A DNA stretch of 64,000 nt from Podarcis muralis (lineage: Eukaryota), in assembly GCF_964188315.1 (NCBI RefSeq), contig NC_135657.1, positions 99,634,001 through 99,698,000 of the forward strand, written 5' to 3'. Numbering within the stretch: the stretch's first letter is position 1; the number at the start of each line of letters is the position of its first letter. Below are positions 6,108 to 40,778 of this stretch, in pieces. A program made the position numbers and the translations under genes. The notes beneath the pieces were generated by a model. That model saw nothing but the letters and a program-made list of their open reading frames with translations, made no database searches and was not told where the DNA came from.

Positions 6108-6470
6108 AGGTAAAGGTAAAAAGGTTAAGTCCAGTCAAAGGCAATGATGGGGTTGCGACGCTCATCTCACTTTCAGGACGAGGAAGCCGACATTTGTCCA
6201 CAGACAGCTTTCCGGGTCATGTGACCAGCATGACTAAACCACTTCTGGTGCAATGGGGCACTGGCGGAAACCAGAGCGCACAGAAAAACGGTTTACCTTC
6301 GTGCCACAGCAGTACCTATTTATCTACTTGCACTGGTGTGCTTTCAAACTGCTAGGTTGGCAGGAGCTGGGACAGAGCAACAGCTCACCCTGTCGTGTGG
6401 ATTCGAACCACTGACCTTCCAATCAGCAAGCCCAAGAGGCTCAGTGGTTTAGACCACAGTGCCACCCACG
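6108..6470 (-). mobile_element. Sauria SINE
   Basis: Full-length Sauria SINE motifs with an (ACCTTT)n tail; 8-bp TSD TTACTACT (6100-6107, 6471-6478). Confidence 0.9.
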
Positions 6471-7075
6471 TTACTACTTGGTGTGACTTATGTTCTGTGT
6501 CCTTCAAATGTTGTATTGTCACCACTCAGGAGTTTTCAGGTGAACTTTGGAAGAGTTCAGAATCAGGCCAAAGTCCTCACCACTTCATCATCCTGTTGTC
6601 ACAGTAATCAGCCAGAGGCCTATTCGAACCCCCAAAACAGGAACTGAGCACAAGCACTCTACTCACTTGCGATTCCCAAGTCTGGCATACAGTTTGCCCT
6701 AAGTACCATGTATGCTTTTCACATGTTTTGTTTAATTTTTTAAAAAAATAATACCATGTGGAGGGATCAGGTCCATGGCACACTGGAAGAGAAGGCTAAC
6801 CCATTCCCTCTACTGAGTCTTGATGGAAACCCACTGCCACCTGCCAAAAGATGCTTCCTGCATGAACGGCATATGGGGGGCATTTTCTTTCAGGATGGGA
6901 CGAAGCCTTAACTCCCTTCTCCCTGTTTGTCATGAGCCCAATCCTGATTTTGCTCTGCTTCAACTGCTGACCTCGGAGCTAAAGGGAGACATATGATTCT
7001 CTCCAACAATGTCCAGTGTCGCAGCTAAATTTCTGCTCCAGGGCGAAACTTAATTCTGCACTCCAAACACCTATA

Positions 7076-7301
7076 CAGTGGTACCTCGGGTTACATACGC
7101 TTCAGGTTACAGACTCTGCTAACCCAGAAATAGTACCTCGGGTTAAGAACTTTGCTTCAGGGTGAGAACAGAAATTGTGCTCCGGTGGCGCGGTGGCAGC
7201 GGGAGGCCCCATTAGCTAAAGTGGTGCTTCAGGTTAAGAACAGTTTCAGGTTAAGAACGGACCTCTGGAACGAATTAAGTACTTAACCCGAGGTACCACT
7301 G
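7076..7301. mobile_element. Tigger/mariner-type MITE
   Basis: TIRs CAGTGGTACCTCGGGTTA...TAACCCGAGGTACCACTG; a near-identical copy lies at 37861-38086. Confidence 0.9.
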
Positions 7302-9443: not shown

Positions 9444-9805
9444 GGGACGCGGGTGGCGCTGTGGGTAAAACCTCAGCGCCTAGGACTTGCCGATCACATG
9501 GTCGGCAGTTCGAATCCCCGCGGCGGGGTGCGCTCCCGTCGTTCGGTCCCAGTGCCTGCCAACCTAGCAGTTCGAAAGCACCTCCGGGTGCAAGTAGATA
9601 AATAGGGACCGCTTACTAGCGGGAAGGTAAACGGCGTTTCCGTGTGCTGCGCTGGCTCGCCAGATGCAGCTTGTCACACTGGCCATGTGACCCGGAAGTG
9701 TCTCCGGACAGCGCTGGCCCCTGGCCTCTTAAGTGTGATGGGCGCACAACCCCAGAGTCTGTCAAGACTAGCCCGTACGGGCAGGGGTACCTTTACCTTT
9801 ACCTT
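9444..9805 (+). mobile_element. Sauria SINE
   Basis: Runs gggacgcgggtggcgctgtggg...cctttacctttacctt; the flanking duplication taatgctct(ggg) occurs at 9435 and 9806. Confidence 0.92.
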
Positions 9806-10810: not shown

Positions 10811-11163
10811 TAGGTAAAGGTAAAGGGACCCTGACCATTAGGTCCAGTCGTGACCGACTCTAGGGTTGCGGCACTCATCTCGCTTTTTTGGCCGAGGGAG
10901 CTGACGTACAGCTTCTGGGTCATGTGGCCAGCACGACTAAGCCGCTTCTGGAGAACCAGAGCAGCGCACGGAAACGCCGTTTACCTTCCCGCCGGAGTGG
11001 TACCTATTTATCTGCTTGCACTTTGACGTGCTTTTGAACTGCTAGGTTGGCAGGAGCAGGGACCGAGCAACGGGAGCTCACCCCGTTGTGGGGATTTGAA
11101 CAGCCAACCTTCTGATCAGCAAGTCCTAGGCTCTGTGGTTTAACCCACAGCGCCACCCACGTC
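10811..11163 (-). mobile_element. Sauria SINE
   Basis: Full-length reverse-complement match to the other copies. Confidence 0.92.
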
Positions 11164-12816
11164 ACCACATTTAAACTATGTTGTAACCTTTTAAGTCTGC
11201 CTTCTGGAAACCTTTGTGTGAACAGATGATCACTTGTGAGTAAACGTTTTATGCTTTACAGAAGACTGTGTAGCGACTTATTTTAGGGAGGATTAAATGG
11301 GGGAAATACCAGGAAATATTTACAGAGACTCTAAGGAGTCTGAGCAAGCTATCTGCTGTGTGTGTGTGTTTAAGAAAGGAGAATGTTAACTCTGCTGATT
11401 TTGTTGAACTTGTAAAGACAAGTTGGGATAGGATATCTTAGACAATATATCCTTCCCCCGCATCCCTAAACATCCCCACAGGGGCTGCCCCTTCTTGTAC
11501 GGAGCTCAACTCCCCTGCACTCACCAGAGCCTTGCACAGCTTTGTACTGTATTCTCATCATTTCTGACCACTGGCCAAATTTACTCTGCTGGCTGTGACT
11601 TGCAGGTTTCCTTTGAACTGTGGGTGGAAGGGAGATGAACACAGCTTTTCTATTCCAGTGTGGACTTTGACTCCCCGACTGAATTGGGCAGCTTCCAAAG
11701 CACTTTGCCCTTGAGATAGGCCATTTTCTAAAATGCCAAATTGGAGTCGGAACCAAAATCTGTGATCAGCACATACTGAAGCATGTAAGATCATGAGAAG
11801 TAGGGAGGAAAACCATCCGGGTTGAGATCTAAGCATGCTTACGTGAAATGAGTAAGATTTCCTCCTAAAATCCATGTTTCACAGAGAGATGCATGCCAGC
11901 AAACAGTCGTAATAAATACAGCTCAACAGAAAAGAAAGAAATGCATTTTAATTGTTAAGGCAGTTATCCTTGGTAATGATTGAGTTACTACATAGTAACA
12001 AATTCAGTGCCTGAACAGATTTGTGTCGTAGGTCAAGGAAGACAAAGGATAGTTTAGTAACATAGTAATAATCACTAACAGTACATATGACTGCCTTTGA
12101 CATGATTCCTACATTTCTCCTGCTGCTGCTCATCTGAAGACATTCTAAGTGGCACATAACCAATTGTTTGTTGACCCTGGCAATGATTTCCAACGAGGGA
12201 CAAAAATTTAATTTAAACATTTTATCCAATTTTTTTGGTATGTGAATGCATAAAAATCGAAAGGCCTCTGAGTACTTTGCATAAATCTAACTGGATGTTG
12301 GGGTTGATATTATAGTACACAACAACTGATTTCTCAAAATTAGTACATAGCCCTGAAATTCATGCAAAGTGTTGTAATTCAATTTTAAAGCCTTGTTTGG
12401 ATCTACCTGGGTTCTCAAGCATCAAAATCATGGACTCCCCACATGTTTAGCATAAATCCCGATTAATGTAATTGAACTACTTTTGCCACCAGCAAGTTCT
12501 ATGTCTGTGCTAATACTGAAAGAACGCACTTTTAGTCTGGACTGAGCAGCATGAAGGGTCTATATAACCCCCTCATTTTCTTATCCCAAATTGGTTTGGA
12601 CATTATTATTACCCATGATCATGCCAGGTTTCCGAAAGCATGCCCCCTGACCAGAATGGATTTAAAAGTTGAGTTAGATGTGGGAGTAACTTTTCACAGA
12701 ATTTGTAATAAAATATCAAGGTGGCTGACAAAAAGTTAGCAAGGTGTATGTGGAGAAGCAGTATAAATCAAGAAAAATAAGGCCACTGTTTGCAGTGATT
12801 GTCGTAGCTCAAGTGC

Positions 12817-15800
12817 TCAGAAGTTGAAAATCTTCCTGATCTGTACAATATACTTTTCATCAAATGGGGGCTTCCTCTGGCTGCCAGGCTGCAAGAATTT
12901 CTTAATTGTAGGGATGTTGCTTACTCTTGTCTTGAAGGCCTAGATGAAAAAACAAGAATCTCCTCTAAGAATAAGGAAAAATTTCCCAACATAGATGGGC
13001 TTACATTTGAGAAAAAGACCCCATCCTTCAGCTTCAAATGTTTGCTTTCCTCTTCCCTCCCCATTCCATTTTCCTTTTGAATCATTGTGAACTTTGGGCA
13101 GGGGTTTTGAAAATGTTATATGTTTTCACATGAATTGTTGTTGTTTCTAGACATGTACAGTGGTACCTCGGGATGCGAACGGGATCTGTTTCGGAGCCCC
13201 GTTCGCATCCTGAACAGATTGTAAGAGGCAACAGCGCATCTGCGCATGCGCGTGTCGCCGCTTCCGCGCATGCGCGTGACGTCATTTTGACCGTCTGCAC
13301 ATGTGTGAGCGGCGAAACCCGGAAGTAACGCGCTCTGTTCATTCCAGGTCGCCGTGGAGCGCAACCCGAAAATACTTATCCTGAAGCGTATTTATCCCGA
13401 GGTATGACTACTGAAAATGGAATTCTTTGATTGTCAAATTCTGAGTCGTTGAAATAAAGTTTTAAGTGCTATTATGACATGGGAGTTTTGAAAAGCAACC
13501 AATCTGCTTAATAATAAGCAGGGGCATATTTTTACAAGCATTGTAAAAGTATTCAGAGATAATTATACACATGAGTCTAAATCAGTGAAAGAATGCATCT
13601 ATGGAAAAAGATCTGTGGTCCCATGGTGTTGAATCCACATGTGAAATCTGAACTTTCTCTATAGTCTTTCTACAAGGCCCCCTCCAACTCTATGATCTCA
13701 TGAGCCATTTTTAGTCAGGTTGTCTTGCCATGCATCAAACTGAGGCAATTCTAGCCAGGAGATGAAGCACTTTTACCATCAAGCAAAGTAGATGCAGAAG
13801 TCTAGATGCCTGCTCCACAGAAACTTCCAGATGCCTGACATAAGGACATAAGACATATCCCCCAGATGGCCACTTGGACTTGTCTCATACACTACCATAA
13901 TCACCATCATATAGATGATGACAATCTAAGTGCGGCACACTCCTATGACTGAAGTTTATCCAGTTGCTGTATTTGCACTCTGTGAATACACACAGTCTTA
14001 CAGTTTACGTTCCATCTCATATCTCAGAACATGTCCTAGTTCACTCACTTGCAGCAGAGGAAACGCAGAAAGAACATCGGGCTTCATCTCTTCGACCATC
14101 AGAATAGCTTCAAGCAGATGGACATCTGCCCAGCTGAACTTCCCACCAACAAGGAAATCTTGTCCATGATCTTTTAAAACCTGTGGCATACAAAGAAATA
14201 GAAGTCAGTGTTGAGGGTATGTAGACCCCTGGCTCAGACTGGGCAACAGAGGCTCCTTGTGGATTATTTCTGCTTCTTTTGTAATTCAGACATGTAAGGC
14301 TGAGAGGCAGGCAGGGACTGTCCCATGAGAGTAGCCACTTGGCTTTTTCGTTCAAATATACATTTTACACACTTGCATGTATCCCACTGCATAACACCGA
14401 AAGGCCCTCATTGCTGTGATCCTCTGCTCAGTAGCATTGGAACTTGACATTGGGGTGGGAAACCACATATTTGCTGGACTCCAGCTCCCATCAGCCCTAG
14501 CCATCATGGCCAATGGTCAGGAATTAGGAGAGTTGTAGTACAAAATGTTGGTAGACTTGTAGGTTTACTATTCCACATTTAAGTGCTTCTGCAGAATTTT
14601 GCTACTGCTTTGGATGGTTCCCCCCATACACCTTCAGCAGTTAAGATCTAGTTGCACATTCTACGTTGCTACCTGACAAGCCCTTACCTTTTCATAAACT
14701 GGGAAATATCTGGTTGTGGCCCTCTCAAACATTAGGCTGGTCTGCTTTTCTTTGTTCTCAGGGGGCTGGAAAGGGAGGGTCATTATCATCCCCATCAGAT
14801 CAGTTGTTCCTTCCACGTACATGTCAATCCTGAAAGAAGCCATTAGAACAGTTACTTTCTTTTTTGTTCTTCTTCTTGTTGTTGCTGTCAATCAAAATAC
14901 AAGAAAATCAAAATATAATTACAGCATATTATACGCCCCAAAATTAGAAATACATTAACAATATAACGTATACAGTAAATAAAAAATAGAAACAGATTCA
15001 ATGATGCTGTTTATCCAAATAGAAATATATATATAATTACTTATGTGACTTTTACCATTCCTAAATTTATATGCAGGTGAAAAATCATGACCAGCTCTAA
15101 TACATTTCAGCAGCCCTGTGGAAGGACATATATTTGTGCAACCAGTCAGTTGCAACCCAGCATGAATGATGGGATCTTCCACACATGTATGGAAGGTTAG
15201 CATATGGAAGGTCAGCAGGCATGATGCATGATGTGTTTGGCATTATCATGTTATTGGACAGTTTCCCTCCCCAAGGAGCTTTAGTCTAAATGTTCTTGTA
15301 AGAATCACATTGTGACATTTAGCTCTGGGAATATAGAGATACATAAACAGAAAGATGATTGAATGTTTGCAGTTCAGGGCAGACATTCTGTGTTTTCAGC
15401 TTCTGTCAAGAGCTGGCTTTCTATTCAAAAATAAACCTAGGGTGAATTCTACATGTTCATAAGTACAGTGCTCTCTCCTTCAGGTCCTTCCCGTAGAGGT
15501 TGTGCTTTGCGGCGATGTAGCTGAGAATAGCTCGCGTCTGCACCATCTTCATCCCATCTATTTCCACCATGGGCACTTGCTGAAACAGGAGCTGTCCATC
15601 TTTAAAGGAGAAAAAGATGGGGATGAATGATTAGACAAACTTAGATAGTTTAAACTAGTACTTCAAATTGATTCAGCCTGCCTTCTTTGAAAGCTAAAAC
15701 TGAAGTATAGCACTCTCTAATAAGGATCACATCTCGGTAGAGCAGCTTTCTTTAGGAAAATGCGGCTCCCCATTGGTTTGTATGATTCAAATAGAGACGT

Positions 15801-15975
15801 TGTTTTCCATTCCAGCCTGTTTTCATTCCATACACTGTTTCTATTCATCATTCATTTCTCTGTCCATTGTAATGGGATTTAAAAAGATTTTTTATTGAAA
15901 ATTTTTGAGATACAATACAATAAAAAACAAATTAATAAAAAAGAGGAAGCAAAAGGAAAACAAAAAGACAAAGAA

Positions 15976-16045
<70 letters not shown>

Positions 16046-18495
16046 ATACAAAGCCCTTTTTAGGTGGATCTTAACATTTATCTCACACAAAAGTGGATGG
16101 ACCCTCCCAGATCTCACTGGGGGGATCCTCCTTTCCCTGCCTCTCACGCAGGATCATTCATCAGCAATCCATTACTTTCCCACAGTGATAAAATTATGTA
16201 ACTTACAGAATTAGTTACATAGCTTACATTGGTGTTCCGTTACGTCATCCCATTCATTTTGGTGCGACGTAAACTCAAGACAAATGGGGTGTTTGTAAGT
16301 ACTTTCATACTGTTTTCAATGTTGTGTTTTAATATTGCAACCCCCTTTTTGGGGCCTTAGGTTGAAGAACAGGCGGGAAATAAATAAATATAATCAATTA
16401 TGTATCATATGCGGAGAGAAAGAAACAACAGTGAATACCAGTCATATTAAGTGGATTGATTTCCATTCTGGACATGGGCAAATATACCAAGCTGGCAATT
16501 TCTGCTCCCACTTCCATTTCTGTTGAAATTCTATGACATCCCCAAATCCAAATTCCTTTGTGTTTCCCCTGTGCAAGCAAAAACCAAACCATATTTTTTT
16601 TTACCCATGAAAATAACAGTATTTGTAGACTATGATGTGGACCCCAACACTAAGTGATTTCTGAAGTGTTCATTTAAAGAATCAATGGGGGCTCCCCCTT
16701 AATTCTTTAAATATATCAGTCCCATGTAGAGAACACCTTCACCCATAGACTTACTCTTCCGTAATTTTTCCAAGTCTTCATTTGTTTCAATAAATTGTTC
16801 TTCAAACTGAAACAGAATAGAACAAACAGAATCATGTTTGCTTTTCATGTCCTAATTATCTTGAGAGAAATAGATGCTTGTCATTTTCCTTGACTTTAAA
16901 AGCACCTGGAGCTTGGGGGACTGTTTTGAAAACCTGCAAAATGCAATGCAGCCATTAAATTCCTTTCCCCCTGCCTCACTGCTGTATCCTCGTATTGATT
17001 CATATTACAAAAAGGATGGTTGGGATGAAAAGGGCCCCTTTGTCTTGGCAGAAATCATGCGCTTGGTCAGTATACAAGGCAGAGTTTCTTTCCTATGTTT
17101 ATTTTCAGCGTGCCACACCATTCATACGATTCTATTGCTTGAAAGGACTTCAAAAGACAAACCGTCCAACCCACTGAAATGAGATCATGTTGAAGATTCT
17201 GAATCATTCCCAGAGACACATTTGTCTTGGCCTTCCCTCTGTAGCTGGGGAGTGTGATCCCTCTCTCTTATATATAGCATTTTCTATTATGTCAAAAATA
17301 AATTTTTATATATTCTAAAATACACCCACAGGTTCTCTGTTTTTGAAATATATTTGGAGTCGAGAGTGGATTTCATGCTCTTTATTCAGCTCATAGTGGT
17401 GAGGAAGAATGGAAATTCCCCTAGAATGTCTGCTTTATATACATTATTTACACAGCGGGCCCCACGTGATTGGCTAATTCCGGGATTCTTCTGTAGGCCA
17501 GTCAGGTTGCGGATTCACTTCCACCTGGAGCTGGATTGGGTGGCTCCTGTGGACCAGACTGCTGCATTCTGAATCCTATTGTTCTAGGACCAATCAGACT
17601 GCTGCATTCTGAATCCTATTGTTCTAGGACCAATCAGACTGCTGCATTTTGGATCCTATTCAACTCAGTACATAACAGGTTTGCATGTATTTCTCTGAAC
17701 TATATGGCTGATTAGATGACCTATATTCACTTGCCTGGGAGTACAGCCCACCAAACTCATTGGGATTCCCATTTAAGTCAACATGTATAGGATTGTGCTG
17801 TATGATTGAAAACAAACAACTGTCCCTTGAATTGGCAGCCAAATAGTTTTATTACTTGGGATAGAGGTTTTCCTATGCAGCTAGGGCTGCCATACATCTG
17901 GGGAAACCTGGACATGTCCTCTTTTGGAGGGCCGACATGCCGCTGCCAGCCTGAGCTGAGGACTAAGAGGTGCATGGGTGTGGCGGCAGCCCCAGCTCAG
18001 ACTGGCAGTGGCTCGGGCTGTCCTCCTTTTTGCTCTTCAAGATATGGCAACCCTAGATTAACATCAGAGTCTTGTGGCATCTTAAAGCTGCACTGAGTGG
18101 CTGGGGCAACCCAGTCAGATGAGCGGCATATAAACAATAACAACAACAACTAATAATAATAATTTTAGTATGGCATAATTTTTCATGGACTACAGTCCAC
18201 TTCATAAGATGCTTAAAACATTCTCCTGAGTTGCAGTAGAAGTGTATGTGTTTGTGTATACAGACACACAAACGTACAGAGAGAATTGTGTTAATAGCAC
18301 AACATACTGCACATATATTTAGCTGTGTGTGCAAAAGAGGCCATTCATCTTAACTATTGCTAGTTCATTCATCCAGCATTGCCTCCCCGCTTTTATGGTC
18401 ACACAAACCTCCACTCCAGCTGCTGCAAGGAGCCAGCGTATAGATTCCATCTTCCCTCTCCCTCGAACATAGTGCAACTTGGGTTTCCCAGCCAT
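12817..18495 (-). CDS. GSTA: Glutathione S-transferase alpha class, copy a (6 coding exons, 222 aa); paralogue number not assignable
   Basis: Exons 18495-18409, 16806-16755, 15599-15467, 14829-14688, 14180-14049, 12939-12817 (87/52/133/142/132/123 nt = 669 nt), with GT-AG boundaries inside the CDS and no premature stop. Starts [29 protein letters not shown], contains [18 protein letters not shown] and FSWAD, and ends [18 protein letters not shown]. Candidate ATTAAA at 11952-11947. Confidence 0.95.
13158..13410. mobile_element. Tigger/mariner-type MITE (GSTA-a intron 6)
   Basis: TA-CAGTGGTACCTCGGGAT...ATCCCGAGGTATGACTA, with a degenerate right TIR. Confidence 0.8.
15979..16046. repeat. (GAAA)n microsatellite inside an AT-rich L1-3'UTR-like tract
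   Basis: Read directly from the sequence. Confidence 0.9.
17344..17677 (-). mobile_element. Solo LTR (probably Gypsy-type) in GSTA-a intron 2, sense to the gene
   Basis: The minus strand reads TGTTATG...TATTTCA, with about 2.7 tandem 40-bp CCAAT-containing repeats (17553-17660), TATATAAAG at about 17441-17433 and AATAAA at 17386-17381. The TSD is only imperfect. Confidence 0.75.
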
Positions 18496-18910
18496 CTTTT
18501 CAGCCTTCTACTTTGTCAAGTACTGCACAACTGGGTTTCGCAGTAGAACAATGTTATGGACTGTCCTAAAATGGAAGATACAGAAAACTGGGGATCAAAC
18601 AGACAGAACATTGGAAGTGTTGGGATACAACTCCGCTTGTATTGGAGGCTGGTGGGTCTGCACGGGGAGAAAGAAGATAGAGAGGAAACCTCATGGCTTC
18701 CTAGATTGTCCTTTAACATGTGCTGACCTTTCCTCAGGTGCTAGACTGATGCACTCACTCTTGCTGACCTCATTTCCTACGGCTCCCTCTTATCTTGAGA
18801 GAGGAGACATTGTTATGTTTCTCTTGCTGAGAACAAAGAGCAGGCATGGCACTCTTTTTCTCCCTCCACTTTAGTTAGCTAGAACTAGGATCTTTTCTAT
18901 CAAGCATGTA

Positions 18911-19169
18911 CTGTATTTTTCGCTCTATAAGACGCACCAGACCACAAGACGCACCTACTTTTGGGAGGAGGAAAACAAGAAAAAAAATATTCTGAATCCC
19001 AGAAGCCAGAACAGCAAGAGGGATCGCTGCGCAGCGAAAGCAGCAATCCCTCTTGCTGTTCTGGCTTCTGGGATAGCTGCGCAGCCTGCATTTGCTCCAT
19101 AAGACACACACACATTTCCCCTTACTTTTTAGGAGAGAAAAAGTGAGTTTTATAGAGCAAAAAATACGG
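18911..19169. mobile_element. pogo/mariner-type MITE with an internal perfect hairpin
   Basis: TA-flanked TIRs ctgtatttttcgctctata / tatagagcaaaaaatacgg; internal 28-bp inverted repeat at 18997-19024 and 19046-19073. Confidence 0.85.
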
Positions 19170-19482
19170 TATTTCCTTTAATAAACTTGTCTTTCCTAAA
19201 CTCAGAGCCTCAGTGTGATTGCATCAAGGGTAAGGCATGCTCCTCATTGTTAAGCTCAGCTTTTAATGATCATGCACTTAAACTCCATCTCCCATCATTC
19301 GGCAGGTAGACTGCTCTGACTTTGTGCTGGGTGGCAGTTTTATCTGTCGAATTTCCACCTCTCATACAGTTGTTAAAGGCACAAAGCATACAGTTATCCA
19401 CCTTTCAGGCCTTGGAAATAGAATGGGGATGTATGACTAAGCAGATCTGAGTAGCTTAAAACTGAGCTGTTGAACAAGCACA

Positions 19483-19626
19483 CATAGAATCTTAGAATTG
19501 GAAGGGACCACTAGGATCATCTAGTCCAGCCCCCTAAAATTCAGGAATATTTTGCCCAACATGAGTCTCGAACCCACAACCCTGAGATTTAGAGCTTCAT
19601 GCTCTACCCACTGAGCTATCCCAGAC
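19483..19626 (-). mobile_element. tRNA-Lys-derived SINE with CR1-like tail
   Basis: Minus strand reads GGGATAGCTCAGTGGGTAGAGCATG...GGTTCGAG (A and B boxes), then GGACTAGATGATCC...CCCTTCCAATTCTAAGATTCTATG. Confidence 0.8.
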
Positions 19627-20559
19627 CCTCTTTGCTTCTCTGCAGTTTCTTTGTTGATTTTGGATCTTTCTCTCAGGTCAGATACACAGAGTGAACTATG
19701 CCACCAACCCAAGTTCTTGTAGCTGCTCCCTCTCTGTCCTTCTTCCAGCTTTGGATTGGCTATGGAGAGGGCCAGAATTGATCTCAGAGGCTTGCAGTTG
19801 ATGATGAACTGCCCTGAAACCTCTGGGTATAGGGCGGTAAATAAATGCAATAAAGAAATAATAATGGTGATGATGATCTGTTAAATACAATCTGGATTTT
19901 AGTATGCAGCAGCATGACCTTGCAATTAAGTTAACCATTTACCTTAAGTACGGGTTTATGTACCCTGAACCATTTGATAGTGATAGCTGTTGCAACCAGA
20001 GCAACCAACGTTTGAACTGAACACAAAAAGAGTTCTGCTGGATTAGGTCAATGGCCAGCATCTTGCTCTACAGTGCCTAGCCAGATGTCTATGAGAAGCT
20101 TGCAAGCAGAACCTGGGGGGAAAAGTACTCTCCCCTCGTATTGTTTCCAGTAACTGGTATTCAGAAACAGGCTGCCTATGACAGTGGAGGTAGAATTACC
20201 TCTGTGTGATCAGACCATGGACTTCCTCTTGAGCTCACCTTTGCTTATAACATTGCCTGAACTATTGCCTCTGTGTGACCTGAACTTGGACTGTCTCTTG
20301 ACCTTGACCTTGCCTGAATTACTAGCTGGGTGTCCAGTACCTGGACTGCTTTGTGGCCTAATTATGGACCCTTCCCAGCTGAGAGACCTGGCCTGGAACT
20401 CTCCCAATCTTCAGCTTCATTGAATGTCCTCAACTTCTATCATTATGAGGGGGGGGGGGGTGTCCTCTATCCACTTTCTCTACACCATGCATAATTTTAT
20501 ATACATCTATCATAATTTTATACACCTCCATTTGCTCCTGTAGCTGTGCCTTTAATGGT

Positions 20560-20965
20560 CACGTGATGTCCTATAATAGTACTACTCTCCTCTGCCTTGG
20601 TCAGTACTGTATCTGGAGTGCTGTATCCAGTTATGGACACCACAGTTTAAGAAGGTTATTGACAAGCTGAAACGTGTGTAGAGGAGGGTGGGCAAGTTGA
20701 TACAGGATCTAGAAAGGAAGCCTTATGAGCAGGCATAAGCAAACTCGGCCCTCCAGATGTTTGGGGACTACAACTCCCATCATCCCTAGCTAACAGGACC
20801 AGTGGTCGGGGATGATGGGCATTGTAGTCCCAAAACATCTGGAGGGCCAAGTTTGCCTATGCCTGCTTATGAGGAACAGTTGAGAGAGCTAGGTATGTTT
20901 AGCCTGGAAAAGAGAAGACTGAGAGCCCTTCAAATACCTGAAGGGCTGCCACATGGAAGATGGAG
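20560..20965 (+). mobile_element. CR1 LINE fragment interrupted by a hAT MITE
   Basis: CR1-like text (ctggagtgctgtatccagttatggacaccacagtttaagaagg...agcctggaaaagagaagactgag) is split at the duplicated CTTATGAG. Confidence 0.75.
20730..20865. mobile_element. Palindromic hAT MITE
   Basis: CAGGCATAAGCAAACT...AGTTTGCCTATGCCTG, near-fully palindromic; 8-bp TSD CTTATGAG (20722-20729, 20866-20873). Confidence 0.92.
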
Positions 20966-21339
20966 CAAAATGTGCCCAAGGCCCTATAAACTAGGGATTG
21001 TCATTTGATATAGCATGCCTGTTCATTCAGCTTTCATTCAATCTTGAACCCCTCCCGGTTCACTACAGTTTCAGCATTTTGTTGTTCTTGCAGTTTGCTG
21101 TGCAGCAGGGCCTGTAATCCATTTAGAAATGTTTGAGCCAACTTATGTAACAAGGAGGTGTCCACTTACGAAATCAGCTGGGTTCTGTAACCTGACTTCT
21201 CTGACTCATATCAGATGTGCATATATACTGCATGGGTTGCAATGTGAATATGCAGAATACTGTCTTGATACATTCCCCTTTCGTTTCCCCGCAACCTGCT
21301 GCCTGAGTGTGTTCAATGTGTTTGGTCCTTCGTGTTTTC

Positions 21340-21600
21340 TTTTTTTATATAATAAATAATTTCTATTAATTTTCCAGCATACATTTATAATATCCAATCT
21401 AAATTTATCACATATTTTCTCTTTTGGACTTCCTTCAGCCTCTCTAACAATCATCCATTATTCAATTTTTTAATTACACATTTCCTAATTTTTATGTTGC
21501 ATTATATATACCTTCACCCTCTTATTTTTCTTCAACACAATATTCCTCAAACATTCACAGAGCTTCTTGATCGTGTTTTCTGCTTTGGGTTCAAAAGAGC
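21340..21600 (-). mobile_element. L1-type 3' end fragment
   Basis: The minus strand ends in an A-rich tail and has AT-rich L1-3'UTR-like composition. No TSD was confirmed. Confidence 0.5.
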
Positions 21601-22980
21601 ACTTGCCATTCTTGTTGGAAGTGGTCTAGACACCTCAGGTTATTACAGCTAGCCAGTGGGGGGCAGTTGCCCCACTTTTGTGGTGCCTATAGCCCCTCTG
21701 GACAGCAATAATATGGTAGCACTGGGAAAACCCTGCAAAACAAACCAAGGCTGAATAAACCCAACACGAATGCACTATTATTGTGTCAGAACATACTGCA
21801 CAATACAGCCACAAAAAACCACCAGCAGTCTGGAGGGGTCTCTTGTCTCCCAGGTCCAACACTTCAATCGCTACACCACACTGAAAGTTGTTTGTAAGAG
21901 AGGATTTTAAAAAATAAAAAATAAAGGGAGGGAACACATTCTTCCCCCACAGATTTATAGCTTGGACAGAACTATCCATTTGGTAATATGTATGTGTGAA
22001 TTGAAAACTGCGCGCTTCCTAATTTGAGAAGAAATTAAAATGTTAAACAGCAAATAGAACTTCTGAAACAATTGGTTTCCTTAAAGGTCGTGGAAGGAAA
22101 GTTTCCCCTCCTCCTCCTAGGAGCCATCTGAGACTCCCCAAAAGGTTTCCAGGAAAAGTCGTCCCTAACCGCTTCCCCTCTCTCTTGGCATATTACTATT
22201 GTCAGCTTGTTCTTGTAGCAGATGGTAAATTGTTCCAATTAATTCTCTGCGAAGCCCGCCTCACTTTCTTCCCTGCAACATACCACAAAACCCCAGAATA
22301 GTGGACCTTGTTTGCTTTATCCAGCTTCTTCCCCGTTCCTCTTTTTTTCCCTCCCAACACCCTTCACAGCTCAGTAAAAGAAACTCCGGTGATCCAACGT
22401 CTAAGTTTGCAGTTATTTCCCAGCCACGATATATTCCCTATCAAAGCTGCCTATCCAATTTGCTTACCCAGCTAGATTTAATTCTTGCTAACATTTGCCT
22501 TCACCTTTTTAGATTCTACTTCTCGACTCTCTAAAATCCCTCTTTCCCCTTCCCCTTCCCCAGCACAGCAAGCTAGCAACATGCAAACTTTGGCAGATGT
22601 CAAGTTTATTTTAAACAGCTGAACTACTGGCCCCATTTCCCCTCCCCTCCAGCCCTCGTTTATATGGCAGGAAAGCAGCGTCTGATCCTGAACAGTTACT
22701 TCCAAGCTTCTTGTTTTGACTTCCCTTCCACCCACTCGACTGTAGTTTCTGCAATCTGCTTTCCTTTCCCTCCACGCTTTAAAATCCCACCGTCCTGCTT
22801 TCGAAAAGAAAAAAAAAGCCCTTGTTCTCCTTTGCCCATCTCTACTGCAGCTAATGTCTGCTAAAGTGGATTTTTTAAAAATGCAAATCTGTCACCTTTG
22901 CTGCACTTCTCCCTGGTTTAAATTACTTCCCACATAGCTGAGTGCAGAAAGCAAAGCACCTCACATTTTCCAGTACTAAC

Positions 22981-23280
22981 CTCCAAACCTGAATCCCCTT
23001 CCAGGGTCTAGGCAAAGAAACTGAGCTTCAAAAGGCTTTACTTGGTTTGGTTTTGGTTTTTGTTCCACCTTCTCCGAAGATTTGCAGGGGGGGGGGGCGT
23101 TTATCCTGTGACAAAAGCACAACGCCTGCTGCACAGATCCAATCAGCTTTGCCTGAGTTGCCCACAACTTTCTGACACCCAGCCTTTCTCGCCCACCCTT
23201 GCAGATGGGGAGGAGGAAATCTCTGCAGCGTCAGGACTCAGCTGTACAGTAGTCCTATAAAATTCCTGAGGCGTGGCTCC
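22981..23280 (-). promoter_or_regulatory. Predicted promoter and non-coding exon 1 of GSTA-a
   Basis: Collinear homology with 38980-39217 upstream of GSTA-c (ttcctcctcccc, gggtgggc, tgcaaatcttc.gagaaggtggaacaaaaacca, ccctggaag.ggattcagg). Conserved donor GAG|GTTAGT at 22980. Confidence 0.65.
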
Positions 23281-25743: not shown

Positions 25744-26093
25744 GGGATGCGGGTGGCGCTGTGGGTTAAACCACAGAGCCTAAGACTTGCCAATCAGAAG
25801 GTTGGTGGTTCGAATCCCCGCGACGGGGTGAGCTCCCATTGCTCGGTCCCTGCTCCTGCCAACCTAGCAGTTCGAAAGCATGTGAAAGTGCAAGTCGATA
25901 AATAGGTACTGCTGCAGCGGGAAGGTAAACGGCGTTTCCATGCGCTGCTCTGGTTTGCCAGAAGCGGCTTAGTCATGCTGGCCACATGACTCGGTAGCTG
26001 TACGCCAGCTCCCTCGGCCAGTATAGTGAGATGAGCGCCGCAACTCCAGAGTCAGTCACAACTGGACCTAATGGTCAGGGGTCCCTTTACCTT
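25744..26093 (+). mobile_element. Sauria SINE
   Basis: Full-length; 13-bp TSD TACCATCATTTTA (25731-25743, 26094-26106). Confidence 0.95.
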
Positions 26094-27097
26094 TACCATC
26101 ATTTTATGGGGGCAAAATAAAGGCTGTAAAAATCCCACAACATATTTTTCTGGGAATAAGCACAATTGAATTCTGCGGCACTTGTTTCTGTATAGGACTT
26201 GGCTGCATAAGACGGGAATCCCTAAACACACTTTCCTGCAAGTGAGTGCCACTGAGTATCATGGGACTTGCTTCTAAGCAAACATGCATAGGATTGTGTT
26301 GTAAAAAAGTTGTGTTGTGTTGAGTTGAGTTTCCATGTCACCATTTTAATATTATTATGCGCCATTATTTATATCTATTGCAAAATGTCCTTAAATTTAG
26401 GATTGGTTTCTGCATACAACAAAACCTGTTGATTTGATGTCTGTACAGCTTGCAATAAATAAATAATTACGAATATGTTGATTTTCTGCATACTGTTAAA
26501 TGCAGATAATACAAGAATGGAACATGTGCAGTTTTGGAATTTTTAATGCAAGCCAAAACAGCTCATGACCCCCCGAGAACAACTTGGGTCGCCCCTCAAG
26601 GCCCTTTGCTCCTTTCAGTTGGCCCCAACTGCAAATTTTCATGGTCCACCCAACCACCCATCTGAGTCCAGCTGCAAACCTCTGAATCTCATGATCTGCC
26701 AAGAAAGCATCAGCATGTGAAAACAGCTAAAGGCGAGGGAGTATTTATTTAAGGTGAAATAACTAGATAACCTCAATGAAACAAATATAAAAGAATGGCA
26801 AGGCTCACAATTTTGCAGCTGCCGTACTGGATTTGGACCTTAACAAGTCCTAAACTGCCTGCAGGGGGACTGTTTGCATTGCTTTTCCTCTTACAATTAC
26901 ATTTAACCTTTCTGTTGTGCTGTGGATTTCATTCCAGTCTTAAACGATGCGCTGCCTGGGCATGTAGAGCTGGTAAAAGCTTTTGAACTGTGACATGTTT
27001 GCAGAACAGTGATCTCGTTCATTCATTTTTGAGGGCAATGGAAATCTTGGTGTTTGCTTTAGATTAAGTTTTCATCAGCCTTTGAGCATTAATACCT

Positions 27098-29267: not shown

Positions 29268-29575
29268 GGACGCGGGTGGCGCTGTGGGTTAAACCACAGA
29301 GCCTAGGACTTGCCGATCAGAAGGTCGGCGGTTCGAATCCCCATGACGGGGTGAGCTCCCATTGCTTGGTCCGTGCTCATGCCAACCTAGCAGTTCAAAA
29401 GCACATCAAAGTGCAAGTAGATAAATAGGTACCGCTCCGGCGGGAAGGTAAACGGTGTTTCCGTGCACTGCTCTGGTTCTCCAGAAGTGGCTTAGTCATG
29501 CTGGCCACATGATCCGGAAGCTGTACGCCGGCTCCCTCAGCCAATAAAGCGAGATGAGCGCCGCAACCCCAGAGT
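29268..29575 (+). mobile_element. Sauria SINE (3' tail missing)
   Basis: Matches the other copies up to caaccccagagt. Confidence 0.92.
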
Positions 29576-29747: not shown

Positions 29748-32700
29748 ATGTCTGGGAAACCAAAACTGACGTATTTTGAAGGCAGAGGAAGAATGGAGTC
29801 CATCAGGTGGCTCTTAGCAGCAGCTGGAGTGGAGGTTGGTTGCTTATGTTTGGAAAACTCCCCTTACACCAGATTGCTTGTGAAATTTGCACTATTGTGT
29901 GCTCTGAGCTTTGAACAGGAGATTTCACAATTCACAGCTCACACTCTTTGCTATTTCTGTATCTACAGAAGAGCCAATGCAGTACCTTTATGCAATGAAA
30001 AGAACTGGCATGACACAGGAATGAAAATAACTTGATCTGTTTTCCTGTCTTTTTCCAGTTTGAAGAAACGTTTTTGAAAACAAGAGAACAGTATTTGAAG
30101 TTAATAAAAGGTAAAACTCACGGTGCAAACCTATATATGCCTATTCAGAGGGGAAACCTACTAAATTCAGTGGGGCTTAAGCCCAGATCAGTTTTTTGCT
30201 ACACATGCATCTTTTTCTCCAAAATCTGGAAATACCATTTGACATGTTTGACAAATACGTCCTCTGAAACGGCAGTCAAACTCCATTCATTTGTTTAAGG
30301 ATAACCTTGCAGGTGGCTTGCACGTCCAACTAAATCTGAGCAAATGCCTGAAGCTTTACTTATAACCTGGATTTAAGGCTGTTGACAAGGGGGTTAAATT
30401 GATTGTAACTGCACTATAAATGCTAAGACTTTATAAGCATATATGGTGCAGCTATGATCAGTTAAAAATACAAATATTTAGGTTACAAAACTATAAAAAT
30501 AAAGAAAATTTAAGCTTGCAAAACAATAATTACCACATGGTTAGGGTAGAACGACATGTCAGTGACCACTTATCCCCAGTGTAAATATGACATATCGGCA
30601 AAAGTCGGAAACTGGAAGATAACTATAGCATGTACACGAAAATCGATTTCAGATTTGAAATCAGCATTGAAAGAACGTATAAGAACAATTGAAAAATCTC
30701 ATGCAACAGAAAATGAAAAAAAAAATTGTTGGAGATCTGGACGGGGGAAACATAATTAATATTCTCCCCAAAATCTGTAATATTCCTCGGTGCAAAAGAT
30801 CTTTCAAATTTTATTGCGTGTTACATAATCCAGGCTGCAATCCACAAGCTCTTCCTTGAAGGCAGTTTTAAATGGGCTTGAGTACCTGGGCTGTGGGTTA
30901 GAATATTGTAACATGCCTCATTGGAACAATTAGCTTTATTTTGCTTGGTGTATTCTTTGGGGGTGGTAGATTATAAAATGGCCCCAGGATCTGACATTCA
31001 AATGGCCTGAGCATGTAGAAATCTGTCCAGATTTAAAGGTGTGGTTGATTCTTGGAATGCTGCAGAACCCATGGGAAGCTGGAGGTTTGAATCATATGCA
31101 AAACAGGGCCTGGGTTAGAAAATTTACTTCTAAGCAATGTTTTCGAATCCTTTTAATTATTTTAAGCATTGTTTAGCCAAAAAGGTTCCCAAAGTGGCTT
31201 ACAGATCTTGAAAATAAACAAGACAGTTCCTGCTCTCAGGCTAACAGTCCAAAAGATGTGACAGAAAAGGAAAAAGGTGTTGGGCAGAGAAGAAAATAAG
31301 CAAAAAGCTGATACCAGTTCTTAGTGCTACTAGGTAAAGGTAAAGGGACCCCTGACCATTAGGTCCAGTTGTGACCGTCTCTGGGGTTGCAGCGCTCATC
31401 TCACTTTATTGGCCGAGGGAGCCGGCGTACAGCTTCCAGGTCGTGTGGCCAGCATGACTAAGCCACTTCTGGCGAACCAGAGCAGCGCACGGAAACGCCA
31501 TTTACCTTCCCGCCAGAGCGGTACCTATTTATCTACTTGACTTTGACGTGCTTTGGAACTGCTAGGTTGGCAGGAGCAGGGACCGAGCAACAGGAGCTCA
31601 CTCCGTTGCGGGGATTCGAACCGCTGACCTTCTGATCAGCAAACCCTAGGTTCTGTGGTTTAGCCCACTAGTTTCTTCTAAAAAGCCAAAAGGGGCTGGT
31701 CTCTCTGCAGAACTAACATAGGAGCTCTAGCAAAGCACTTTATGCTATGCTGAGCTGATTTCCCCCAACTCTGCAAACTGTGTAAAGTATTGGTTGTTTT
31801 TTCTATCTCAGGTTGGGAGCTTGATGCAATCTTGTGTTAGACACTCACACAGGTGGCACCTGGGAAAGGTGGGAGAGCTTATTCAGTGAGTCGAATGTTG
31901 GACTCATTAGTCACCATAGCAGGGAGAAGTCAGCTTTTCTTCTCTGACAACGGAAGAGCCTCCAGTCTATTTGGAAGGTTGCACACACATTCCAGGCATG
32001 AGATACGTTACTAAATGATAGTACTGTAGATTGAAATTTCTCTTGGCTGTTTGCCATATGGCAGAAAGTGAGGCCACGCGCTAGCTTTGAAAGTGTTTCA
32101 CTGTGGAGGAATCTTGCCACATTTCCTTAATCTCACAGAATAACTGCTTTGGAAAGATGAATGACTTTGCTTTTGCTTTTTTCCTTTGCTTCCTAAAGAT
32201 GGATACTTGCTGTTTGATCAAGTCCCTCTGGTCGAGATGGATGGGCTGAAGCTGGTCCAGACCAAGGCCATCCTCAACTACATCGCGGGGAAATATAACC
32301 TCCATGGGAAGAACCTGAAAGAAAGAGCACAGTACTGTATCATGGTTCACCATACTGTACTTGATAGCTGCATTAAAAGACTCCAGTGGCGTTAACAGTG
32401 TTTGCACATGCTCACAAATTTGCATTGCCTAGGAAAGAGGAAAAAGGCTGTGAGAGGCCAAGGAAAAGATATTCTGGAAGATTTTGGCTTCTTGTTCTAA
32501 CACCCATCCCATATGTGTGTTCATCCGGTGTGTTACATTTTATGGGTGATGTCCAGTGTTGATCACACTCAGTGTTGATCACACTGAAATCCATGAGCAA
32601 AAGGCCACTGATTTCAATGGTCTCCTTGTTCTTCTATGTATGACTAACCTTGGCTTTTACCCTAACATCCTACTGTTATGTGCTCTCACTTTAGAGTGTC

Positions 32701-35700
32701 AAGGAGCAATATTTAGAGGTTCAGCTTCTTTTAGGATGATGGAGAGGGAACCCTGGAGGCTTATGTAAATAATGGCATTATTTACATATCTAGGGAAGCA
32801 GACAGCCTTTCCACTAGCCAGTAGCAGCTCCCTAGGCAGCTATTTCTGCAGCTTCCTTGAAATAGCTCCTAGGTTCAGCTAATTCCACTTAGAAACTTCC
32901 AGTTCTTTCTCTCTAAGGGGGTTCAGATAACCGATAAGCATTGAAATAATGCATAAGGATAGGTCAACAGGCCACATAAGCTATTTTCCCAAGAAGTTCA
33001 ATCTAGCAGATTAATTTTCCTTACCCATGCCTGCCTTGTCCTCACAGCATTGACATGTATGTGGAAGGAACCATGGACCTGATGGGCATGATTCTGGTGT
33101 ATTCTTTCTCTCCACCTGAGCAAAAGGAGAAGCAGCTTGCTTCTGTTCTTGAGAAGGCCACTACCAGGTACTTCCCAGTCTACGAAAAGGTATGACAACA
33201 ACGATTCCCATTCGTAGCTACATCAGGGATGGGGAACCCAAAGCTGAGTGACACATTACCCAGGACCAGCCTGTGCCTTCTAGATCTTTTGGACAACAAT
33301 TCCCAACTGGCAGGGTATTTCAAGGACCAGTCCTTACCCTCTCCTTCCGGGTCTTCAAGAGTTTATTTGCAGTGCCTTGTCCAACTTTATGTTACCAAAT
33401 CAATGGTTGGACTAAATCAGTGCTTGGGGTTGTCCCTTTTTTTGTTTTCAACATCATCACTTGATAAAGATTTGCATAGCTGGGAATATAGATTGCAGGG
33501 AGAGGGCTAGATTTCTCCCTCCAGGCATTCAAGTCCAGGTCTTCTCAGCCTTGGCTGCCAAGTGATGGCCGTTCCACCAGGCATCACTTCTGTCTAGTAA
33601 GTCTCTCTGTAAACTAATAGTGATCTCAATTCTTTGAGTGCTGGTTTGTATGCAGCCAAAATGGCATCACGCAGACATATGAGGGAGGCATCAGCATGCT
33701 TTGGGGAACCCCTGAGGTTTTCGCAAAAACAAAATCTCTTTAGGTGGGGGGGGGCACTAAGGCAGTTTTTTAAAAAAACAAAACAAAACACCTTGAAACA
33801 CCAAGAAGGGGCAACGCATGGTGTGCTGAGTGACTGGGGAGCTGAAAATGAGGATGGGTAGCTAGAATCTTCTACCCTGCAAATTCTGATGATTCCCTCA
33901 CAGCTGGGGGGGGGGGTGTTTCACCTGCATTATCTCTTATTTGAGCCTGTCTCACCTGGTGCTGCCTGTAAGGGAGAGGGGTGGGGAGGGAGCTATCAAG
34001 ATCTGCGTAGCACATATGATGTTTGAATAGAAGTCGGCCACACTATCCCAAAACTCCCCAGCAAAATTAAAAGTACGTTCTTTATTTTTGTTTTCTAGGC
34101 CCTGAAACAGCCTGGACAAGAGTTTCTCGTTGGTAATCGCCTCAGCTCTGCAGACGTACAGCTGCTTGAAGCAATCTTAATGGTAGAGGAGCTAAAAGCT
34201 GATGTTCTTGCACCCTTCCCTCAACTGCAGGTAAACGGTTGGTCGAGTGTGTTGCGCATAATTCTGCTCCTGTCATGTCTCAGAATGCGTCGGTTCTGAC
34301 CTCTGGATTGATGTGTGTAGAATTCAACTAAGGCTAAACTTGACCCTTCTTTCTTTCTTCTTTCTCTCTTTGGCGATCACTCGTAGCCGAGTAAGATTGT
34401 CTTCCATAAACACAGTTTTAACAATGAGTCCGTAAGTGACTGTGGAGGCCAATTCTGGATCCACACGTCCTTCCACAATGGGGACATTGGTTTCTGGGTG
34501 GGAGTTGATCACGGTATGGATTTGCCAAGTGTGCCTTCCTCTTAGCACATTTCTCTCTTGCATCCTGAGTTTGAGTGTCTTCAAAGCCCATGGCACCTTT
34601 GGTAAAGGCTGTTTTCCAACTGGAGCGCTGGCCTGCGAGCGCTCCAGTTGGAGAACAGCCTTTACCAAAAGCTTGACCCTTACACAAGGGACTATAATGA
34701 TTCCCTATCTGGGCAACTGATTCCAGGAAGCTGCCTTCTAGAAAGTCAGACTGTCAGTCCATCCAACTCAGTTTTGTCTACTCCAACTGGCCAATTCTCC
34801 ATAATTTCAGACAGGCGAACCTCTGAGCCCCACTTGGGGATTGAACCTGGAACCTTCTGCATACAAAGCAGAGGTTGTACCATGGATTTATGGCCCTTCC
34901 TGCTCCTTCCCTGCTCCCTCTCAGCATGTTGGATGAAGGACTCTGGGCAGGGTACAGTGACCTCTCTTTGCTCCTCTTCCTCACCCCCGCAATCTTTAGG
35001 CAATGTGCTGTGACCATGATTCACTGATTTTTGCAGTGCTTGATTGTTAAAACAACAACAACAACAACAACCCTCAAAGCTGTCAACTCAGTGGTGTTGA
35101 TGTGATGAAGCGAGCCAAGGGAGAAACCAGACCACTGTGCCCACCTTCGCTCCCCACACTTCTCAAGTCCTGCTGCTACCTTGACGCAGTGGCTCTCTGA
35201 CACTGTTCTTGGCAGACTGGCAGGGCCTAAGTGCCAGTGGTGTAGCGTGGGTTGCTGGCACCTGAGGTGGGGCAAGTGTTATCCCCACCATCCGGTGGAC
35301 TGGGCAGCTGGTGTGAGGGCATGTGCTGGGGTGTGTGTGTTTGCACAGAGTCTGCAAGGAGGATGAACAGAGCCTGCCTCCAATAGGCTCTTCGCTGGCT
35401 GCTTCCATCCACCTGCCCTCTAAAGCAACCCACCCACTGCCTCAGCTGCCAGGGCTCTGTGCCTGTCTTGAGGGTGCCTGGTTGTGCCCCCTCAAACATG
35501 TGCATCCCAGGCCACAGTCCCCCTGCCTCCCCCAAAGGCACACTCCACAGAGCTGCTTCCCTGTGCACAATCCCCATCTTGTACTATTATGTTTGCGTCT
35601 CGAGGCCCGAAGACCCACCCCCAAAATAAATACACACAGACACTTATATTAGTTTAAGTTTTTTGGGCAAATTTTGGCCACAACTTTATTGAAATACAAT

Positions 35701-37483: not shown

Positions 37484-37860
37484 GAAGCATTGCACCAGAT
37501 TTTTAAGGCTACTTGCCAGAGTCACTATGACTGCTGAAAGCCAGTGGGCCTGTAAATGAAATGATTGTTACCTCTCATGAAAAAGCAATAAGTGGCGATA
37601 CGGAATGTTGAGCAGATGTTGTTTCTGTGCATGGGGGTAAATTGATTTAATGTATGTAAAGTGCCTGCATTAAAATATTCAACAAGAGTGTGTTTTCTTT
37701 TGTACTGCAAAACGACACGGCTACTTATCTATTTATTTATTTATTCGTGCAAATATTTATAGCTTCCCATCTAATGCATTCCTTTTACTCGGAATGGCTC
37801 ACAATAGTATTTTTTTTAAAAAAACAACAACCTTGACATTCATAATAAAACAACTATATA

Positions 37861-38086
37861 CAGTGGTACCTCGGGTTACATACGCTTCAGGTTACAGACT
37901 CCGCTAACCCAGAAATATTGCTTCAGGTTAAGAACTTTGCTTCAGGATGAGAACAGAAATTTTGCTCAGACGGCGCGGCAGCAGCAGGAGGCCCCATTAG
38001 CTAAAGTGGTGCTTCAGGTTAAGAACAGTTTCAGGTTAAGTACGGACCTCCGGAATGAATTAAGTACTTAACCCGAGGTACCACTG
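37861..38086. mobile_element. Tigger/mariner-type MITE
   Basis: Perfect TIRs and TA TSD on both sides; sister of 7076-7301. Confidence 0.92.
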
Positions 38087-40392: not shown

Positions 40393-40426
40393 CAGAAGCC
40401 TGCCCCCCGCCGCAATGTCCTATTTA

Positions 40427-40778
40427 AAGGTAAAGGGACCCCTGACCATTAGGTCCAGTCGTGACCGACCCTGGGGTTGCGGTACTCATCTCGTTTTATT
40501 GGCCGAGGGAGCCGGCGTACAGCTTCTGGGTCATGTGGCCAGCATGACTAAGGTACTTCTGGTGAACCAGAGCAGCGCACGGAAACGCCGTTTACCTTCC
40601 CACCAGAGCGGTACCTATTTATCTATTTGCACTTTGACGTGCTTTTGAACTGCTAGGTTGGCAGGAGCAGGGACCGAGCAATGGGAGCTCACCCCGTCAC
40701 GGGGATTCGAACCACCGACCTTCTGATCAGCAATTCCTAGGCTCTATGGTTTAACCCACAGCACCACCTGCGTCCCAT
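40427..40778 (-). mobile_element. Sauria SINE (GSTA-c intron 1)
   Basis: 13-bp TSD AATGTCCTATTTA (40414-40426, 40779-40791). Confidence 0.95.

Follow-up and report, generated by a model that had tools for sequence, protein, structure and literature searches.

Evidence for recurrent gene conversion between two inverted alpha-class GST genes of Podarcis muralis

In this work, we analysed a stretch of 64,000 nucleotides of the genome of the lizard Podarcis muralis (assembly GCF_964188315.1, contig NC_135657.1, positions 99,634,001 to 99,698,000 of the forward strand; hereafter the window), which does not contain any N. Our subject is a pair of glutathione S-transferase (GST) genes of the alpha class, GSTA-a and GSTA-c, that lie in inverted orientation in the window and appear to have exchanged sequence repeatedly. 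The window holds four intact genes of this class, each with six coding exons:

12817-18495, minus strand: GSTA-a, coding exons 2 (18495-18409), 3 (16806-16755), 4 (15599-15467), 5 (14829-14688), 6 (14180-14049) and 7 (12939-12817)
29748-37483, plus strand: GSTA-b
42611-49407, plus strand: GSTA-c, coding exons 2 (42611-42697), 3 (43909-43960), 4 (45325-45457), 5 (46324-46465), 6 (47055-47186) and 7 (49285-49407)
52261-56612, plus strand: GSTA-d

All four genes share coding exons of 87, 52, 133, 142, 132 and 120-126 bp, intact reading frames and AG/GT at all junctions between coding exons. Six exons of 87, 52, 133, 142, 132 and about 123 bp are the usual pattern of vertebrate GSTA genes. GSTA-a and GSTA-c have 222 codons each, and their products are 100% identical to the P. 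muralis RefSeq proteins XP_028578210.2 (P0311) and XP_028578205.2 (P0320), respectively. Pfam domains GST_N (residues 6-76) and GST_C (residues 100-192) were found on a GSTA product, whose best matches in the PDB were chicken GST A3 (1vf1, E = 1e-104), GSTA4-4 and human GSTA1. Based on these domains, a length of about 222 residues and the nearest solved structures, we assign the window genes to the alpha class of cytosolic GSTs. GSTA-a and GSTA-c are divergently transcribed, with GSTA-b in between, and self-BLAST placed them in the arms of an inverted duplication of about 10 kb (12774-23086 chained with 49450-39118). A fifth lacertid GSTA paralogue, P0209 (P. muralis A0A670I3P2), matches none of the genes a to d and is not in the window, so that the GSTA cluster extends beyond it.

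A first-pass annotation, made from the letters of the window alone, had described a probable conversion tract over exons 5-6 of this inverted pair, and the counts on which it drew proved exact. On our recount, a and c differ at 9/87 positions in exon 2, 7/52 in exon 3, 4/133 in exon 4, 1/142 in exon 5, 2/132 in exon 6 and 24/123 in exon 7, and the differences in exons 5-6 are all synonymous (3/3). The coordinates it had given, 13600-14860 with a partner at about 46290-47640, were correct within a few bases. We delimit the two copies of the proposed tract as follows:

13596-14860, minus strand: tract in GSTA-a, about 96% identical to c at aligned bases; it starts within intron 4, 31 bp ahead of exon 5, spans exon 5, intron 5 and exon 6, and ends 453 bp into intron 6
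46294-47646, plus strand: partner tract in GSTA-c, lengthened near 46632-46696 by about 65-80 bp of c-specific intron 5 sequence

Self-BLAST paired 13596-14537 with 47646-46697 (93.9% identity over 958 columns) and 14528-14859 with 46631-46294 (94.4% over 338 columns), the remaining collinear a-c blocks showing 66-79% identity. Global MAFFT alignment over whole introns aligned unrelated DNA, with meaningless values of 40-60%, and collinear BLAST blocks were used instead. The tract contained 47 mismatches in 1256 ungapped alignable columns, that is, 96.3% identity against 80.2% outside it; for non-coding columns alone the values were 95.5% and 79.0% (Fisher p = 1e-39). Intron 5, which the first-pass annotation had judged by eye, together with the start of intron 6, to be roughly 90% or more identical, shows 95.9% identity across 507 aligned bases, apart from a single c-specific indel of about 65-80 bp. 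P. raffonei c has the same extra stretch, intron 5 measuring 583-589 bp in the c genes and 507-514 bp in the a genes.

Synonymous divergence followed the same course. The number of synonymous substitutions per site (dS, Nei-Gojobori) between a and c was 0.33 in exons 2, 3 and 7, 0.07 in exon 4 and 0.054 in exons 5-6. The last value is below the dS between orthologues of P. muralis and Zootoca vivipara in the same exons (0.12-0.15) and matches the 4-5% divergence of the tract introns. Silent and intronic divergence is therefore uneven along the pair, as claimed from the first reading of the sequence, and uniformity is refuted. In a max-chi-square scan with free breakpoints, the best segment was 15598-13594, from exon 4 through the tract end, with a score of 202 against a permuted maximum of 20 (1000 permutations; p below 0.001). 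In a GENECONV-like fragment test on the coding sequences of the four paralogues, the a-c pair reached p < 1e-4; its longest identical run is 161 bp (14813-14653). A tandem-repeat search found none inside the tract. The GC content of the tract introns (0.43-0.47) is slightly above that of other introns (0.34-0.44), and we make no claim of GC-biased conversion from this slight rise.

The identity step is sharp at both ends. In a sliding-window plot, identity climbed abruptly to 90-100% at a 14860 / c 46292 and dropped abruptly near a 13600 / c 47646, with no gentle return to the background of 75-80% at either end. The sequences that adjoin the tract are the following:

14861-15236, minus strand: 5' border, part of a intron 4 (about 375 bp) without an alignable counterpart in c
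47647-48543, plus strand: 3' border, c-specific intron 6 sequence (about 900 bp, part of it old) absent from a

At the 5' border, about 600 bp of c intron 4 (45697-46293) are likewise unalignable to a. The homology between a and c stops there in both P. muralis and Zootoca, and each copy still aligns to its own orthologue. Past the 3' border homology resumes between a 13597-13456 and c 48544-48685, at 75% only; this border lies at the same place in Zootoca (position 443 of a intron 6 and position 390 of c intron 6). Because the a-c alignment ends alike in Zootoca, both heterologies must be older than the split between Podarcis and Zootoca. Intron 6 of Podarcis c received a later insertion of about 650 bp (~47717-48369), which is absent from Zootoca c. 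The tract is an island of uninterrupted collinear homology between structural differences.

Two repeats were observed near these borders. Part of the region of the Podarcis insertion (47707-47987) resembles 11192-11480, with 75% identity. Additionally, a 197-bp inverted repeat (90.9%) links 41824-42020, upstream of c exon 2, to 45944-46138 in c intron 4, the latter copy sitting in the unalignable stretch just 5' of the tract border. This repeat is probably a transposon fragment.

The two genes were then compared among related lacertids: a and c of Zootoca vivipara (L001 and L002) and of P. raffonei (L003 and L005), and a only of Lacerta agilis (L004) and P. lilfordi (L006). Protein queries were exon 4, then a bird GSTA (P0001:1-222), then the Zootoca protein P0243. 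The loci of P. raffonei c and P. lilfordi were reached via the longer isoforms P0319 and P0314 (not P0264 and P0312), and the protein searches returned no annotated c product for L. agilis or P. lilfordi. Informative sites were classed in quartets of two species by two paralogues, according to whether they followed orthology, species or a third pattern, the last one serving as a control for homoplasy.

The same block stands out in the other species with both genes: a and c are 86.5% identical over 1286 columns in Zootoca, with flanks at 68-78%, and about 92% identical in P. raffonei. For P. muralis and Zootoca, the whole tract contained 25 sites of the species pattern, 5 of the orthology pattern and none of the third; exon 5, intron 5 and exon 6 together had 23 and 0 of the first two. 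Outside the tract, the ratio of orthology to species sites was 248:1 in intron 2, 173:1 in intron 3, 101:1 in intron 4 and 15:0 in exon 7. The ordering along the tract is clean, with all 25 species-pattern sites in 14817-13788 and all five orthology-pattern sites in 13734-13605. Among states found in exactly two of the eight tract sequences, 15 were shared by a and c of Zootoca, six by the two Podarcis c genes and four by a and c of P. muralis, and no private state linked a gene of one species to the other paralogue of another (for example P. muralis a to P. raffonei c).

Phylogenetic trees told the same story. The maximum likelihood tree of the core of the tract (14860-13760; eight sequences, 1100 columns) joined Zootoca a and c in one clade (support 100/99), and monophyly of the a genes was rejected by the approximately unbiased (AU) test (p-AU 7.7e-6). 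In trees of the 5' flank, intron 4 and the 3' flank, by contrast, a was split from c with support of 100/100 and a long internal branch, and the AU test spoke against a clade of Zootoca a and c (p = 1.7e-41, 1.5e-4 and 1.3e-5, respectively). The comparison of trees that had been suggested as a check thus gave paralogues grouped within a lineage in the tract and orthologues grouped in the flanks. The core tree also contained a clade of P. muralis c and P. raffonei c (99/98), and its path lengths were 0.055 between a and c, 0.028 between the two Podarcis species and 0.067-0.071 to Zootoca. In L. agilis a, a SINE-like copy in intron 6 (L004, ~14805-15044) disturbs the tract alignment locally. Such incongruence between tract and flanks is the defining mark of interlocus gene conversion.

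The sharp identity step, the homogenisation of silent sites and introns, the incongruent trees, the contiguous run of species-pattern sites and the species-specific patches described below make it very likely that GSTA-a and GSTA-c have undergone recurrent interlocus (ectopic, non-allelic) gene conversion. The reading of the first-pass annotation is supported by the step, the trees and the run of sites, and we extend it to recurrent exchange. In fact, the exchange is layered and not one event, and the tract is made up of two parts:

13596-13759, minus strand: older 3' layer, about 92% a-c identity, with orthology sites at 13734, 13727, 13629, 13628 and 13605
13760-14860, minus strand: core, homogenised after the Podarcis/Zootoca split, with 25 contiguous species-pattern sites and a-monophyly rejected

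In the 3' layer the copies are about 92% alike, yet the sites follow orthology, and exchange there is therefore older than the separation of Podarcis and Zootoca. For the core, at least one round of homogenisation came later than this separation. One conversion in the distant past (or a later partial re-duplication), before the lacertid radiation and followed by independent divergence, would be in line with the same tract and borders in three species and with the predominance of orthology sites within Podarcis (20 against 6 species sites), and it fits the 3' layer, although it explains that layer only. As an account of the tract it is highly improbable: the core tree joins the two Zootoca copies and rejects a-monophyly, 25 contiguous species sites stand against no orthology site in 14817-13788, a-c identity varies by species (86.5%, 92%, 94-96%), and derived states private to P. 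muralis are present in both copies.

Recurrent conversion can be followed from lineage to lineage. Polarity was read from the outgroups b and d, at exonic sites only. A derived C at 14817 is common to the a and c genes of Podarcis and to L. agilis a, which assigns an event to the Podarcis/Lacerta branch. From the end of exon 5 to the middle of intron 5, a and c of Zootoca show only 0-4 differences per 100 bp, compared with 7-13 per 100 bp between either of them and Podarcis; this points to a separate homogenising event in Zootoca. Between P. muralis and P. raffonei, the tract showed 20 orthology and 6 species sites, and together with the Podarcis c clade in the core tree this shows that most of the similarity seen in P. 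muralis predates the split of these two species. Superimposed on it are a patch and a candidate patch specific to P. muralis:

14653-14846 (maximal; minimal 14680-14778), minus strand: P. muralis-specific patch over exon 5, with states at 14778, 14730, 14706 and 14680
14238-14465 (maximal), minus strand: second P. muralis-specific patch candidate, in intron 5, with a dinucleotide (14284-14283) private to P. muralis a and c

The four states of the first patch are present in a and c of P. muralis and absent from a and c of P. raffonei, and the three exonic ones (14778, 14730 and 14706) are derived relative to b and d. This patch contains the 161-bp identical run, and because of it exon 5 differs between a and c at only one of 142 positions. 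The evidence for the intron 5 patch is weak, and its dinucleotide may be a single mutational event. As to direction, the states of P. lilfordi a at 14064-13911 are those of c, which makes this a c-to-a patch, and Zootoca a has c-like bases at 14862-14861; these are the sole clues, and they do no more than hint at it.

Older P. muralis references (P0316 for a and P0270 for c), compared as proteins only, differ from the window at the codon whose third base is 14730: both paralogues encode Ile in the former and Met in the latter. At a Ser/Asn codon of exon 4 (15521) the states are swapped, the older pair having Asn (a) and Ser (c) and the window Ser (a) and Asn (c). As a lead, these variants fit conversion among segregating alleles, and the polymorphism may be shared across the paralogues.

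Homogeneity without any exchange could result from purifying selection on an element of intron 5 and early intron 6, such as an enhancer, a splicing element or an intronic RNA. The tract is centred on two constrained exons, and a mir-5408-like match lies at 14465-14548. That match is sub-threshold (26.8 bits vs a gathering score of 90) and at chance level, however, and no Rfam family reached threshold in a scan of 12500-16000. Selection of this kind is extremely improbable, since it cannot create derived states common to paralogues within a lineage. Moreover, within the tract the distance between orthologues (5-7% for P. muralis and Zootoca) exceeds that between the paralogues of one species, b and d offer no alignable counterpart of intron 5, and dS in exons 5-6 matches the divergence of the introns.

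Another way to make two copies look alike is an error of assembly, in which reads of one copy polish or fill the other, or a repeat is partially collapsed. Errors of this kind are well known from inverted paralogues 30 kb apart, and our evidence comes from assembled sequence. Nevertheless, the copies differ by about 50 substitutions, an indel of 65-80 bp and several small indels, their copy-specific states are common to the orthologous copies of P. raffonei, and the same pattern appeared in the independently assembled genomes of Zootoca and P. raffonei, making three assemblies in total. The chance that an artefact explains the tract is next to negligible. The assembly collapse that the first-pass annotation had considered is thus contradicted, albeit indirectly, by the substitutions, the indels and the agreement of three species.

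A second, small island of similarity probably covers exon 4:

15442-15611, minus strand: second small, probable conversion island, over exon 4 of a (15467-15599); partner c exon 4 (45325-45457) plus a few flanking bases

In the quartet of P. muralis and Zootoca, orthology sites are missing from 15611-15442 and crowd the sequence on either side of it, and two sites within it follow the species pattern. Each of the three species has an a-c dS of 0.07 in exon 4. This exon probably forms an additional, exon-sized island, a reading that draws on few sites in a highly constrained exon. Exon 4 of GSTA-d (54283-54415) is also close to that of a and c, from which it differs by 10.5-12%, compared with 25-35% for the other d exons; the likeness stops at the introns, and a GENECONV-like permutation test gave p = 2e-4 for c-d and p = 0.012 for a-d. 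It may reflect either an older exchange of exon 4 only or very strong constraint. On the far side of the 3' heterology, exon 7 (12817-12939 vs 49285-49407) has diverged more than any other exon, with differences at 24/123 nucleotides and 13/40 residues. Its nonsynonymous divergence (dN) is 0.21 and its dS 0.33 (dN/dS ~0.64), and it was homogenised in none of the species examined.

Based on these results, we propose that an old inverted duplication gave rise to a and c before the Podarcis/Zootoca split, and that one copy was then repeatedly and non-reciprocally overwritten by the other within a block of 1.26 kb whose ends lie 31 bp ahead of exon 5 and about 450 bp inside intron 6. The route would be double-strand-break repair templated by the inverted paralogue, on the same chromatid or on the sister. 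Heteroduplex or synthesis tracts may have been halted by the old indels and unalignable DNA of introns 4 and 6, and for this reason exchanges would end at the same borders in different genera. We infer that the borders were set by heterology rather than by selection, and the direction of most conversion events is likewise a matter of inference. The outcome would be near-identity of the two enzymes over the helical core of exons 5-6 (probably also exon 4), with exons 2-3 and especially exon 7 free to diverge.

Inverted repeats promote template switches associated with replication forks. Template switching during replication, of the microhomology-mediated break-induced replication (MMBIR) or fork stalling and template switching (FoSTeS) type, between the inverted arms would leave the same outcome in the sequence, that is, a non-reciprocal copy bounded by heterology. 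We consider it very unlikely, because nothing in the sequence requires it, the borders carry no scars of junction microhomology or insertions, the tract is precisely collinear, and recurrence at the same block is usual for homology-driven conversion.

The geometry of the locus bears on a further expectation, namely that a crossover within the tract would invert the interval bearing b and swap the 3' ends of a and c. The arrangement from which the first-pass annotation derived this inversion does exist, a and c being inverted with b between them, but the inversion is not fixed in any species examined. The a-type 5' and 3' flanks are linked in P. muralis, P. raffonei and Zootoca, as are the c flanks, and no fixed inversion product was found among these three. 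In L. agilis and P. lilfordi, b is divergent from a and the intergenic region is collinear, as in the window.

Some points weigh against recurrent conversion as we describe it. Selection rather than heterology may limit the tract, and the analysis is based on assemblies, which leaves a small chance of local mis-assembly. The P. muralis-specific patches rest on 4-6 sites; the state at 14730 recurs in L. agilis a and that at 14706 in Zootoca c, so some homoplasy is possible. No outgroup aligns in the tract introns, and the direction of tract-wide events is without polarisation there. Finally, L. agilis and P. lilfordi entered the comparison with their a genes only.

A stronger version of the conversion hypothesis would see the exchange as ongoing in P. 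muralis and the gene pair as a deliberate mosaic. Conversion would keep the core of exons 4-6 identical and spread variants (15521, 14730) to both loci, and selection for different substrate pockets, not heterology alone, would spare exons 2-3 and exon 7, which encodes the C-terminal lid helix. We hold this version to be possible, although rather doubtful.

Other repeats of the window belong to a SINE-like family of about 350 bp, with at least 10 copies on both strands, of which the younger are 88-91% alike, and to a 230-bp direct repeat (93%):

10815-11163, 25744-26095, 29268-29575, 31335-31668, 40425-40775 and 44585-44933: younger SINE-like copies
6148-6467, 9444-9800, 58445-58710 and 61706-61823: older SINE-like copies
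7072-7301 and 37857-38086: 230-bp direct repeat, left of a and just downstream of b exon 7, respectively

Gene conversion is well documented for clusters of detoxification genes, and in a GST cluster it has a precedent in the mu-class genes (GSTM) of primates, where it was recognised from islands in sliding-window plots and from region-specific trees (PMC5918908). Both cases involve a cluster of detoxification GSTs, islands of high similarity, conflicting trees for different regions and events before and after speciation. The primate genes, however, are of the mu class, and their exchange involves direct segmental duplications that flank GSTM1 and is tied to a deletion polymorphism (PMC5918908). 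The lizard genes are of the alpha class and inverted, the exchanged block is intragenic (exon 5 to intron 6), and neither a deletion nor an inversion was observed.

Further parallels come from other gene families. As far as the available part of that study goes, the class I alcohol dehydrogenase (ADH) paralogues of primates also show conversion among clustered xenobiotic or metabolic enzymes that blurs the history of duplication, but they are tandem direct repeats of another enzyme family (PMC3409193). According to the accessible portion of a review on duplicates in Drosophila, ectopic conversion is expected for close duplicates, inverted ones included; these are invertebrate and mostly young duplicates, whereas the lizard pair is old (dS 0.33) and exchanges only within an island (PMC3924832). 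The GOT1 paralogues of the copepod Tigriopus, in the excerpt of the report at hand, likewise combine, within a single pair, segments that were homogenised with others that stay divergent, although in a different gene (PMC3728101). Selection at the lizard exon 7 is putative. Our literature searches returned no report of GSTA conversion in squamates. The lizard case is a new example of a well-known process, not a new mechanism.

The finding has consequences for the reconstruction of GSTA history in lacertids. Trees or dates derived from exons 4-6 would mislead, because the duplication of a and c predates the Podarcis/Zootoca split and these exons would make both genes look young and species-specific; used alone, exons 5-6 would blur the duplication history, as in the ADH case. 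The locus is also a clean natural example of conversion that persists between old paralogues (dS 0.33) in an island of homology fenced by indels. Moreover, GSTA-a and GSTA-c represent a tractable pair of enzymes, with a common core and different N-terminal and C-terminal parts.

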